A stretch of DNA of 64,000 bases from Setoptus koraiensis (GCA_048013815.1 CM106585.1:3844001-3908000); one strand, 5' to 3'; counted from the stretch's first letter, positions 18,473 to 33,845 are shown. Notes: generated by a model not told the origin, from the letters alone. Numbers and translations are program-made.

Positions 18473-18626
18473 GTCGCGAGTGAGTGATACACGCAGTGTA
18501 ATTGCGCCAGTGGCGCTTGATTACAGGGGTGCACAAAGTGAAAAATTTCGTTATTATTATTCAATATCACAATAATTCACCATTTTATGAGGGAGCGCCA
18601 GAGCACTGGATTGATGAGATTCTCAG

Positions 18627-19082
18627 CTATGTTCCATTCGTCTGTTTGTTTGACCTCTCTTGTCGTTGGTAGTTTCGTCGTTTTTGTTTTCTTTCTTGCT
18701 CTAGCAACTTCTCAGCAAGGAAGGCCTGTTTCTCGAGGCGGCCCATGAGCGCCATTCTGAGCTTATCAAACCAGTTCAATTTAATCGGTTGGCCGTCAAC
18801 ATAGCAAACGGTTCTGGTTTTTGTTTGCGTCCAACTCTGGCCATTTCCGCCATGTTCGGTTGTTCTAGTGCCCTCTTTAATGGTGCTAATAGTATGCGAT
18901 TGTTGGGTAACATGTTGCGGTGAATTTGTGGTCGCTGTTGGTGTGCTACTTCTTACTGGACAGCTTGTCACTTCCGTTGTCTGTTTTGTACGCCTAGCCA
19001 TATATTTTGTGTGCATCTGAGTATACTGGTGATATTGTTGCGTATTTAAATTGCTGCTTGGTGATAATTGATTACCTTTCAA
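18627..19082 (-). CDS. Orphan protein (up to 151 aa; T/Q-rich N-half, basic helical C-half); may have an upstream exon ending at the donor near 19333
   Basis: Non-repetitive ORF with VCYVDGQPIKLNWFDKLRMALMGRLEKQAFLAEKLLEQERKQKRR. A perfect cag|gtaagt donor lies upstream on the same strand. No family recognised. Confidence 0.45.
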   Translation of the reverse strand: MKGNQLSPSSNLNTQQYHQYTQMHTKYMARRTKQTTEVTSCPVRSSTPTATTNSPQHVTQQSHTISTIKEGTRTTEHGGNGQSWTQTKTRTVCYVDGQPIKLNWFDKLRMALMGRLEKQAFLAEKLLEQERKQKRRNYQRQERSNKQTNGT

Positions 19083-20030
19083 TTGATTTGTGTCATTGTC
19101 AGTTTGTGCAAATCATTGCAAGTTCATCTAAATAATCAGTACGAGAGATTCATTCTTAGGTAGTATGATACAATTCATCAACTAGAACTGGTGTACATGG
19201 GTAACCAAAATAGCTAATTCCGTTGTTGCACAATTGAAAAATCACACAACCGACATATTTGTATATGTGCCCGCAGCTAGCTCATGACTGATCACTGATA
19301 GTTCAGAATAATCGCTCTGGCAAATGGACTTACCTGAAATCTACTACTAACATCTTTTGACGATATCAACATCATAGTGCTGTCCAAATGAACGAATATT
19401 ACTATTATTAGTATTATTCGGCAAAATATAACAGATCTAATTGATACGATTGAGTGACGATCGGCTTCTCGAAAATTTCATTTGCTCTGTGTGTGCATTA
19501 AACTAAACAATTTTACTGTTCGTTACACCGTTTCTCGAATCTGAGGATCACATTTACCAAATTACTTGCGCAATCAACCTTTGAGGTTTTCATCCTCTCG
19601 CACGAAAGTAAATGATTGTTTATATTCCCTAAAACGTTACATCCATCGTGACGCAATGGCCGTCAACTATTAGCTATTGATAGTCAGTTTTGGTGATAAA
19701 TCATCATGAACGATTAGTCCCTGTATTGATTCCGCATGTTTTTATTCATTGTAAATAAACTAACAATTTTATGCAAATGTTGAATCAGGTGCGATGGCGT
19801 ATAACAAAGCCCTTTATTTGTTGGCATTTATTGACTTTGTTTCATCTTTGTAACAGCCTTAGTTTGACTATTTATTTTGACTCGTTCAAATTGTTCATCG
19901 TAGGCAGCATACACGAGATACTTGCTCTATCTATCAGCGATCAAATATCGTCTGAGCGTCAAATATCCTCTCACAACTCACAGTTTAAATTCGATCCTTT
20001 TATGTAAGAAATTTCCGACGTTGACTCGTA

Positions 20031-20518
20031 ATGGATAACTCGCTAGAGAGCGGCAATGCAGAGAAGGAAAAACCCAACATGAACAATGTAAAATATTTCA
20101 CAGCGATCATAATTACTCTACTCTGCATATTAGCCTGTCTAGTCACACTAGTCTGTCGGACGCCTGGCCGCTACAGCTTTGATTTAGCCTCCATGGATGC
20201 TCGAGAAATTGAAGAGCTAAGTCATGCCAGTCAGTGGCACGAATTCAAGAGGGTTTGCTATTTTAGAATGGACCCCGATTCACAAATGGATGTTAAACAT
20301 ATAGATGGGAATCTGTGCTCGCATGTAATATTTGCATTCTGTCGGTTAGATCGTGAAGGTAACATTGTGTTTGGTGCCAAGTCTGATGAAAAATATCTCA
20401 GACAAATTCCAAAGTTGAAAAGTGCCTACCCTCGCTTGAAGGTCATGCTATCCCTTTACAACGAGCAAGAATTTCAAGGATTTGTCGAGGCTGCAAAAAA
20501 TATCACAATCAGAGACAG
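20031..20518 (+). CDS. GH18 chitinase, exon 1 (N-terminal hydrophobic anchor or signal)
   Basis: FKRVCYF, IDGNLCSHVIFAF, LKSAYPRLKVMLSL are GH18 N-terminal motifs. Hydrophobic stretch YFTAIIITLLCILACLVTLVC. Donor ag|gtaaga at 20518/20519. Confidence 0.93.
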
Positions 20519-20599
20519 GTAAGATGACAGGATCGAATCGCATCAATACTTAGAATCTATTTGAGTCTGTTGTTAATCAATCAATATGAACAACAACAG

Positions 20600-31493: not shown

Positions 31494-32867
31494 CTAATTG
31501 TAGAATCTAGACTTGTTTATTCGCAAGTATAGCTTGTGACCAACTTCGCGCAGTGCACCGCCAACACCTCTCAATGGTCCATTTGCATAATAATCACGCT
31601 GAGCTGCAGCACCGTATTTGACTGCTCTCACACTATCCACCAATCCAGGGGTCCAATTGGCAATAGAGTTGGCCAATAGACGGATGGGGGCGAAGATAAT
31701 ATTCAACGCGTCACCTGTTGCCTCCAAGGCACTGTCACCAATGACCAGAGCAGCAACACCAGTGCGAGTTCCAAGGGTGAATGCTGATTTGTATGTCTTG
31801 GTGAAATCAATCTGGAATATTTGCTCTTCTTGTTTGTCGCTGAACGGCTCCAAAGGTTGGTCACGTTTTGGTACCGTTCTGTTTGCGTTGACAATTGGAT
31901 AGGCCACATTGCCTTCTTTGTCAAGTTCCAGGGTGGTTCGCATAACGAGGGCGCAAATTCTTTCGATGTGTAACCATTTCTTATTGTTCCAATCGTGTGC
32001 CCATTCCGAATATTCCGATCTGTCGAAGACACCGTGATGACCCAGAATATCTACCGGAGCTGTTGATTGCTCGTAGACATGCTCTAATAGTTCACAAGCG
32101 GCGTACATCGGCTGAATCGGCAGTGAAACGGCATCGATATTTTGGCGATTCTCTCTCAGGCCCTGATGGACCCATTCTCTATTGACGTTCGTTGTGGCCA
32201 CACCAGATGGTGCTTCCTCTTCCAATGAATCGTAGAAGGAAAATATTCTTTTCATGTACTTATCCAGATCTTCCATTTTTTCCACCTTGAAACTGGTCAA
32301 TTTTTCCTCATTCCAAATGCACAATTTCTTCGCGTGTGTATTAGATACAAAGTTACACAACAAGGATGATGCCTCGCGTACTTTAGCCAGATTGTTGCGC
32401 TCAGTTTCGGCGTCTGGGTTGCCGCGATGGCTCAATTGGGCACCATCAAACAAGGCGTTTATTTTTTGTGCTTTCGTTTTGCACAAACGACCCAATTCGG
32501 CCACATATTGGTGAAAATTGTTTGAGAAATATTTCGACATGAACGGCTTGGCCAGAATAACATCTCTGTAGAAGTTGAGCAGATCGTCTATGTGCTGAGT
32601 GGTGCAAAGGTCTTGCTTGCTACGCACAACTCTGCGAAATTCCACAATATCGTCCACGTTAGCCAATATTTGGCTATATTTTTTCTCCGTGCCAAACTTT
32701 GTGTACAGGCCCTCATTGTGTTGGTCCCTCAGGTTTGCAACGGCGCCCACAAAATCACTTAGCTGGCTGAAATGCACGAACACTAGATTGTTTTTTAAAT
32801 AAAAGTCCACTATACCCTGATAATCAAACTTATCGGGGTACTTTTTTTCCAGAATCTGCCCGAACGT
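31494..32867 (-). CDS. Large secreted orphan protein, exon 2 (predicted 479 aa in total)
   Basis: 438-aa ORF extended 19 codons upstream (TFGQILEKKYPDKFDYQGI) to the acceptor catag| at 32868/32867, in phase with the signal-peptide exon at 32996-33061. Confidence 0.8.
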   Translation of the reverse strand, partial: TFGQILEKKYPDKFDYQGIVDFYLKNNLVFVHFSQLSDFVGAVANLRDQHNEGLYTKFGTEKKYSQILANVDDIVEFRRVVRSKQDLCTTQHIDDLLNFYRDVILAKPFMSKYFSNNFHQYVAELGRLCKTKAQKINALFDGAQLSHRGNPDAETERNNLAKVREASSLLCNFVSNTHAKKLCIWNEEKLTSFKVEKMEDLDKYMKRIFSFYDSLEEEAPSGVATTNVNREWVHQGLRENRQNIDAVSLPIQPMYAACELLEHVYEQSTAPVDILGHHGVFDRSEYSEWAHDWNNKKWLHIERICALVMRTTLELDKEGNVAYPIVNANRTVPKRDQPLEPFSDKQEEQIFQIDFTKTYKSAFTLGTRTGVAALVIGDSALEATGDALNIIFAPIRLLANSIANWTPGLVDSVRAVKYGAAAQRDYYANGPLRGVGGALREVGHKLYLRINKSRFYN

Positions 32868-32995
32868 CTATGACGCGGCGGATTTGCAGTTGTCGTAGGA
32901 CATTGGCAGATTGTTGTTGAAAATACATTGATGAATATGATTGGTCGCGAATATTGACGAAAAAGAGCTGATCTGGAAACTGCTAGCATACTTAC

Positions 32996-33061
32996 TGAAG
33001 CTTGACTAAGCGCCACGAGAGCGCTCAGTAGAAGAGAGGCCAAAACCAATTTCTCGCTCAT
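32996..33061 (-). CDS. Large secreted orphan protein, exon 1 (signal peptide)
   Basis: [22 protein letters not shown] followed by a perfect donor |gtaagt at 32995; a 128-nt intron gives a phase-0 join. Confidence 0.65.
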
Positions 33062-33845
33062 TATACCGCTCAGTGTTACCAGTTGATTTTGAGTTTGAGT
33101 TGGCGAATCAGTAGTTTAAATTTTCGGTTGTGTTTGTGCGACGTTTTTTTCGAAATGAATCCGGTAGAAATAGATACGATTTGCTTGTGTCGATCCAATG
33201 TCTGCTTGCAACGCATCTCACTGAAACTCGGCTTCTAAATATAAAACTGCGTAGCCGAGGTCTAGCCATTCGAGAATTCACGAGATCACCTGTTGTAGCT
33301 CGACAATTCATGTCAATGGTCACATGATTGCTGCTCTGCGGCAAAATCATCCGCCCAACAGTCTAATAATATCCGATGTGTCACGAAATGGCGCCATTGA
33401 AAAGTGTGGTCGCGGTTCGCACCGTTGCCATCTCGACTTGGCTTTCGCTTGGTGCTGCTCGTCGTGAATGATTTTTCGGGGATTATTTGCTTTTGTCTTC
33501 TGTCTAAATTAGCATCATGCATGGTTGGTGGTTTTCGCACTCATTAGCTCAACCAGCAATCGAGTGACGTGATGAAAATCAGCAAAACAAAAAAAAATCA
33601 GCAAAACAAAAAATTCAACGACAATCATGCCATTCGCACAAAACGAGGGCCAGTGCGGGGAGCCCCAGCCTACCAGCGGTTATATCTCTAATGGGAGGCG
33701 GTTATATCTCCCATACATTATAACTTGGCCACAACAGCAATGTCCACATTTGTGTCCATCGTCTGACAATGATCGTCCGATCAGATAATCGGACTGGCAA
33801 GTGCGATTGGTCAATTATAATTGTATAATTGTAGGTACCGAAATG

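Follow-up and report, generated by a model that had tools for sequence, protein, structure and literature searches.

We analysed a 64,000-nucleotide stretch of Setoptus koraiensis DNA (GCA_048013815.1, CM106585.1:3844001-3908000; hereafter the window), in which the original prediction, made from the sequence itself, had placed an AT-rich candidate effector cluster at 18600-33600 and had likened it to the fast-evolving compartments of two-speed genomes. This block sits in a 16.6-kb gap between two divergently transcribed genes and is probably an old native nest of compact genes, rather than a special fast-evolving compartment. It comprises six clear compact genes, together with a possible gene of 127 amino acids (aa). 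Approximately 40% of 18600-33600 is coding. Five genes have predicted N-terminal signal peptides and, by inspection and hydropathy, no further membrane span; all five are on the minus strand and four lack introns. Their products would enter the secretory pathway by means of these signal peptides, which would be cleaved. These counts agree with the original prediction, as does the description of a gene-dense block rich in signal-peptide genes of no described family, since no Pfam or PDB match was found for any of the five proteins. The accompanying qualification as orphans does not hold: three of the genes form a family, hereafter family A, that has 31 relatives and the largest, encoding 479 aa, has an ortholog.

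Ratios of nonsynonymous to synonymous substitution (dN/dS), determined as whole-gene pairwise values, lie between 0.16 and 0.42 in all pairs, which indicates constraint, apparently without detectable positive selection. The predicted two-speed compartment is contradicted in its defining feature by a block that is gene-dense and repeat-poor.

Family A and its relatives

Family A is present in the window as three intronless open reading frames (ORFs) on the minus strand: copy 1 at 23116-23859 (247 aa, with a signal peptide and predicted to be all-helical), copy 2 at 27812-28564 (250 aa) and copy 3 at 29084-29833 (249 aa), the latter being the sequence used for the structure model. All three reading frames are intact and the proteins share 82-87% identity. 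A blastn self-comparison places copy 1 in a duplicated minus-strand unit at 22905-24144, made up of the coding sequence with approximately 285 nucleotides (nt) upstream and 211 nt downstream. It aligns to 28866-30120 with 88.4% identity and to 27838-28798 with 88%; between the copy-3 unit and 27838-28808 the identity is 89%. The units thus compared measure 1.0-1.25 kb, have 88-89% nucleotide identity and include some 250-285 nt upstream of the start codon. The family A gene was duplicated twice as such a 1.0-1.25-kb unit, carrying its own promoter region of about 250 nt.

Pairwise synonymous divergence (dS) is 0.21-0.22 in all three pairs of copies and dN/dS is 0.27-0.42. The copies appear to be functional and moderately constrained; either two duplications in short succession gave rise to them, or they have been homogenised since. 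Pseudogene fragments, which had been predicted for the block, were not encountered: tblastn with the proteins of the block and 33 fetched proteins, including relatives, gave nothing with E < 0.01 outside the intact genes of the window.

Relatives were obtained by exhaustive searching. With copy 3 as query a word-index search was blank, an exact-sequence look-up gave no record in a protein collection that does not include the window's own species, and an Atlas feature search gave nothing usable. An exhaustive profile search of 1.84 billion representatives identified 32 proteins, 27 of which have an E-value below 1e-10. Thirty-one of these are relatives (P0002-P0032, E 7e-73 to 2e-4). The remaining one, P0033 (1411 aa), is a bacterial repeat protein encoded on a bacterial contig and was rejected as a chance match. 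That a word-index search was blank where an exhaustive profile search recovered the family 31 times calls for methodological caution.

All 11 relatives that were looked up are Logan-only. Five contigs (L001, L002, L003, L005 and L006), which carry the ortholog of the 479-aa gene and four members of family A that were traced, all derive from a single run, SRR33593474. Two contigs of this run have several same-strand family A members; one contig, of 14.8 kb, has seven, two of which are 461-470 aa long and have an additional N-terminal half. The GC content of this seven-gene locus, L003, is 33-41%. In four proteins of the relative (P0027, P0028, P0029 and P0032; 446-470 aa; compare L003 1-3806) the family A domain makes up the C-terminal half, and the N-terminal half of the long members consists of approximately 215 residues, contains cysteines and has no Pfam match. 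The neighbours of the relative's family A members also lack Pfam matches. The two organisms in which the family has been found form a lower bound for its spread.

An alignment of 23 family A sequences has 11 invariant and 17 nearly invariant columns. Shared features are the signal peptide, the motifs HWPR, GL(K/R), LCxP(Y/F)R and LYSAAxIC, and W-x-Y near the C-terminus; the invariant cysteines are C145 and C201. Neither a Pfam scan of the 23 members nor a comparison of the family profile with PDB sequences gave a match. A maximum-likelihood tree unites the three copies of the window (100/99), with P0002 and P0004 as their sister group (100/95), within a set of much deeper paralogs from the relative. 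Hence family A diversified before the two organisms split, whereas the triplication took place after it; the duplications in the window would thus postdate the split from the only known relative. Between the window copies and P0002 dS is approximately 1.2 and dN/dS 0.31-0.36.

AlphaFold provided with the three paralogs alone gave an unusable model (pLDDT 38), whereas the 23 sequences yielded a model of about ten helices with pLDDT 85 and pTM 0.82. Structural searches with this model were negative: Foldseek found nothing better than E 0.5 in the PDB, exhaustive VIA-align gave a best chain at Z 4.8 where the notes of the tool put helical noise at Z 6-14 (Blo t 5 scored Z 3.7), and an Atlas shape search gave TM scores of at most 0.38 by query. 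The model thus appears to indicate no known fold, a weak match being no proof of a new one. Family A would be a lineage-restricted family of all-helical proteins with approximately 225 residues in the mature form and two invariant cysteines, evolving by tandem birth-and-death under moderate purifying selection. With about 34 sequences and a confident all-helical model that lacks a structural neighbour, it represents a new protein family.

Age, continuity and composition of the block

Exon 1 of the 479-aa gene (32996-33061, minus strand) encodes, by translation, a 22-residue signal peptide and is kept with its GTAAGT donor in locus L001 of the relative. Exon 2 (31494-32867, minus strand) has 457 codons and follows a 128-nt GT-AG intron in phase 0. 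This splice model rests on the alignment to L001, in which the donor GTAAGTAT is kept, as are the acceptor CATAG and the frame. A stretch of 12 codons, from YPDKF to GTG, shows synonymous changes only between the two loci. A word search identified the ortholog P0001 alone, from SRR33593474, with 68% identity over the full length and the same exon structure; dS is 1.29 and dN/dS 0.16. Sequence that precedes the ortholog in L001 (44-246) matches 33839-34007 of the window, adjoining the first exon of the right neighbour; the block's right edge thus dates back at least to the time when the two organisms separated. This non-coding match, upstream of that exon, amounts to 89% over 55 nt and 73% over 100 nt. 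Its conservation despite a dS of about 1.3 between the organisms may reflect a shared regulatory element.

The 479-aa protein has no match among PDB sequences or in Pfam. It was also considered as a long family A member, comparable to those of 461-470 aa in the relative, and rejected as such: the best result of hhalign and BLASTP comprised 16 residues, with E 0.013 and 3% probability.

Independent sequencing runs contain the same DNA. Ten runs from five studies contain all or part of 23-33 kb, six of them at least half of the sampled words. A contig of 3120 bp, found with one or two differences in runs of two studies, corresponds to 18706-21825 and crosses both the composition step at 19.0 kb and the whole chitinase-like gene described below. 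Contigs that start at 17901 extend about 370 nt leftwards into a coding exon of the left neighbour, a metabotropic glutamate receptor (mGluR), and the sole contig break, at 18423/18429, falls inside a 24-nt tandem repeat. Support across the left of the two junctions for which the original prediction had called is thereby provided by contigs from two independent studies. Together with canonical GT-AG introns in the chitinase-like gene (81 nt) and the 479-aa gene (128 nt), and an ortholog with conserved flanking DNA, the contigs across this step identify the genes as eukaryotic and native, in line with the original prediction, which took the introns to argue against recent bacterial transfer.

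Within 17901-23900, the range on which contigs were compared, the intervals 21900-22300 and 23100-23500, in the 5' half of a 182-aa gene and in copy 1 of family A, are covered by short contig pieces with 3-5% differences at three to four times the baseline depth. The excess of depth and variants could correspond to alleles, to paralogs laid across each other or to further copies elsewhere. The chitinase-like gene, covered by one clean 3.1-kb contig, is without such variation. Four samples of one study that carry the label of another organism (C), runs X7-X10, contain 8-21% of the words of 23001-33000. The contigs of X7, the one of these four that was compared, are short and of low depth on 17901-23900, with several identical to the window. 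Either the label stands for a close relative or synonym sequenced at low coverage, or the window organism is a minor component of those samples.

Composition was studied by means of 1-kb bins and likelihood segmentation across the window. The bins have 35-42% GC at 19-31 kb and about 44% at 31-34 kb, those at 8-17 kb are also low (38-46%), and no bins other than those before 8 kb and beyond 36 kb attain 54-60% GC. A stricter segmentation threshold recovers a single low-GC domain, 7881-35620, with a GC content of 0.419. At the finer threshold, for which all accepted cuts gain more than 10 and shuffled sequence reaches a maximum of 5.8, this resolves into segments 7891-13180 (0.414), 13181-19000 (0.462), a low-GC and repeat-poor core block of 12.5 kb at 19001-31530 (0.387) and 31531-35610 (0.462). 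The outer segments are 1-7890 (0.537) on the left and 36581-41870 (0.592) and 41871-64000 (0.528) on the right. The main composition steps are therefore at 7.9 and 35.6 kb, and the wider AT-richer domain includes the first exons of both neighbours as well as about 9 kb of mGluR intron. Inside it, the sharp left edge of the core at approximately 19.0 kb is a step of about eight points, down from a flank of 46% GC. The abrupt AT-rich block of the original prediction is hence retained for its low-GC core and its sharp edge near 19000, and corrected for its flanks, which are at 46% rather than 50-60% GC.

The predicted scarcity of repeats was confirmed: the core holds two tandem arrays, which amounts to 0.16 per kb and 0.7% of its bases, versus 0.8-2.5 per kb and 4.5-14% of bases elsewhere in the window. 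Inside the block coding and intergenic GC are alike, at 34-45%, which shows that the composition is regional and not an effect of the coding sequence. Low GC and repeat scarcity may well have one origin, with the block being unique gene-bearing DNA amid a backbone that is GC-rich from GC-rich minisatellites. The observed to expected ratio of CpG is 0.89-1.19 in every segment of the window, without sign of methylation-driven CpG loss. Beyond the core block GpC is in excess (1.2-1.4).

The chitinase-like gene, remaining features and neighbouring genes

The two spliced genes of the block were searched exon by exon. The first, on the plus strand, is the chitinase that had been predicted. Its exon 1 (20031-20518) encodes about 20 cytoplasmic residues, one transmembrane anchor and the start of a GH18 domain (PF00704, E 4.8e-9, 36.7 bits), and exon 2 (20600-21530) matches PF00704 with E 5.3e-53 and 181.2 bits; both scores exceed the curated cut-off of 29.6 bits. 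Between the exons lies a phase-2 GT-AG intron of 81 nt with donor AG|GTAAGA, and the product has 472 aa. Exon 2 has 133 chitinase matches in the PDB, the best at 9e-43, and contains the catalytic DxxDxDxE as DGLDLDWE, which aligns to DGIDLDWE of PDB entry 5gzu. The N-terminus is charged and is followed by a hydropathy peak of 3.23 at residues 26-36. Pfam identified one GH18 domain and no other, a chitin-binding domain being absent, and the closest Atlas cluster of the product is eukaryotic, mainly arthropod. The product would be a type II membrane-anchored chitinase-like enzyme.

An N-terminal transmembrane segment, a single GH18 domain with DxxDxDxE and the lack of a chitin-binding domain liken the protein to insect group VIII chitinase (Cht11), a likeness of architecture alone, in an organism that may not be an insect. 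One difference concerns the first of the conserved GH18 motifs, whose usual GGW is apparently replaced in exon 1. Insect group VIII chitinase is encoded by a single-copy gene and has an N-terminal transmembrane segment and a single catalytic domain without chitin-binding domain (PMC9933517). Since the architecture is that of this single-copy enzyme, the GH18 gene may be an ordinary conserved housekeeping gene.

The fifth gene with a signal peptide (21661-22209, minus strand) is an intronless ORF that encodes 182 aa with an acidic Ser/Asp/Thr repeat tail and has a poly(A) signal 88 nt past its stop codon. No relatives were found for this protein by word search, in Pfam or in the PDB. The possible 127-aa gene (26115-26498, minus strand) is an ORF for a Lys/Arg-rich protein without signal peptide and has a poly(A) signal 19 nt past the stop. 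Its GC content is 0.59 at third codon positions versus 0.37 at first and second positions, its gene status is unconfirmed and the protein lacks matches in Pfam and the PDB. It is the one candidate that was found for the several small orphans of the original prediction. All minus-strand genes have AATAAA or ATTAAA at 19-146 nt past the stop.

Transposable element debris, also predicted, is reduced to traces. A faint mariner/Mos1 HTH_48 match at 24342-24404 on the plus strand remains below threshold (Pfam E 0.06, 13.9 bits, cut-off 24.1). A 172-bp palindrome at 30247-30418, between copy 3 and the 479-aa gene, consists of two nested inverted repeats, one of 42 nt (90% complementarity) and one of 39 nt (85%), and is possibly a miniature transposon; it has no second copy in the window. 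A short dispersed repeat with about 80% identity is located at 27578-27777 and 31003-31158, just downstream of copy 2 and the 479-aa gene, respectively. Rfam and tRNA scans of 17-36 kb gave nothing.

Both neighbours are transcribed away from the block. The first coding exon of the left neighbour (16842-17597, minus strand) matches the class C ligand-binding domain (PF01094), and mGluR chains are its best matches in the PDB (mGluR5 and mGluR1 at 1e-38 to 1e-34, mGluR5 at 1.2e-38; calcium-sensing receptor at 2e-6), which agrees with its predicted identity, as read from this first coding exon only. For the mGluR first exon region (16842-18323, minus strand) group I receptors are far ahead, groups II and III being at 1e-17 or weaker, and the region contains long poly-Thr, poly-Pro, poly-Asn and poly-Leu runs. 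The right neighbour is represented by an acidic, Thr-rich ORF at 34243-34923 on the plus strand, a first exon that ends in CKRKQANPKRC. This motif resembles the N-terminus of ZEB, and the gene is a putative ZEB at most; a strict pattern search of the window found no C2H2 finger exon.

Explanations of the block and comparison with known systems

Several points weigh against an old native nest. None of the ten runs that contain 23-33 kb or part of it is an RNA run. The contigs of four runs were compared on 17901-23900, which covers the left one of the two junctions, the signal peptides were judged by eye and hydropathy only, and the genome-wide reach of the composition pattern rests on one window. 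Furthermore, dN/dS values of 0.3-0.4 are high for a typical animal gene, and positive selection at specific sites is possible.

As regards function, the five secreted proteins presumably act outside the cell at an interface with the environment, such as the gut lumen, saliva, the surface or the reproductive tract, and are most likely binding or carrier proteins rather than enzymes. Alternatively, they might be endogenous extracellular proteins without a role in a host, for instance seminal or other reproductive proteins, proteins of eggshell or cuticle, haemolymph carriers or proteins of the gut lumen. Rapid evolution and tandem duplication are found in these classes as well. This alternative, which we hold to be possible but rather unlikely, draws on the same sequence features as an effector role and on the adjoining chitinase-like gene; the helical globular model with its two invariant cysteines would suit a carrier or binding protein, but none of the structural searches hinted at a carrier family.

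It is less likely that the block is an effector cluster, one of many nurseries, with the five proteins being made in salivary or other secretory glands of a plant-feeding or parasitic arthropod and delivered into a host so as to manipulate it. Predicted signal peptides on proteins of no described family, the recent tandem duplication, the large and arrayed family A of the relative and the moderately raised dN/dS of 0.3-0.4 are what such a cluster would present. However, no RNA run contains the stretch and the pairwise dN/dS values all stay below 1; the 479-aa gene has kept its position across a dS of about 1.3, the gene-dense and repeat-poor block is unlike known effector compartments, and secreted, fast-duplicating families serve many roles other than that of effector. 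As judged from sequence, the proteins may be effectors, but a role in reproduction, in the gut or at the surface would fit the evidence equally well. Should tissue data place them in saliva, they would become promising as new effectors. A bolder version, in which family A is an undescribed secreted fold that an under-sampled arthropod lineage expanded to dozens of tandem copies for use at the host interface, and in which AT-rich, repeat-poor and gene-dense islands serve as effector nurseries in an inverted two-speed arrangement, we consider improbable.

An assembly chimera, a contaminant or recent foreign DNA, suggested by the composition step at 19.0 kb and the lack of homologs in annotated genomes, is highly improbable and largely refuted by the contig 18706-21825 in runs of two studies with adjoining contigs that reach the mGluR exon, by the ten runs of five studies, by spliceosomal GT-AG introns, by an ortholog with matching flanking DNA in the relative and by the eukaryotic Atlas cluster of the GH18 protein.

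We return to an old native nest of compact genes as the probable explanation. It implies that AT-rich secretome islands of this genome need not be fast-evolving effector compartments: in this case composition follows the lack of repeats, and constraint acts on the genes. The block resembles the two-speed compartments of filamentous plant pathogens in its mosaic composition and its grouped, secreted, lineage-restricted genes. The analogy fails because those compartments are gene-sparse and repeat-rich (10.1101/021774), whereas the block is gene-dense and repeat-poor. It differs in that it is approximately 40% coding, is about tenfold poorer in repeats than the DNA around it and shows dN/dS values of 0.16-0.42.

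At the level of the protein, apolipophorin-III, mite group 5/21 allergens and odorant-binding proteins are, like family A, all-helical and secreted, the latter as predicted here for family A, which has no significant structural match to them. With approximately 225 mature residues and about ten helices family A is also larger than the small helical secreted proteins of arthropods. At the level of the locus, arthropods have tandem clusters of taxonomically restricted secreted-protein genes, such as salivary or accessory-gland families. Family A, known here from sequence, differs from these in that it matches no described family by sequence or fold. The likeness consists of short, mostly intronless genes with signal peptides, a narrow lineage, tandem arrangement and a raised yet sub-neutral dN/dS. 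Arthropod genomes commonly contain clusters of lineage-restricted secreted genes, so that there is nothing unusual in the arrangement as such.

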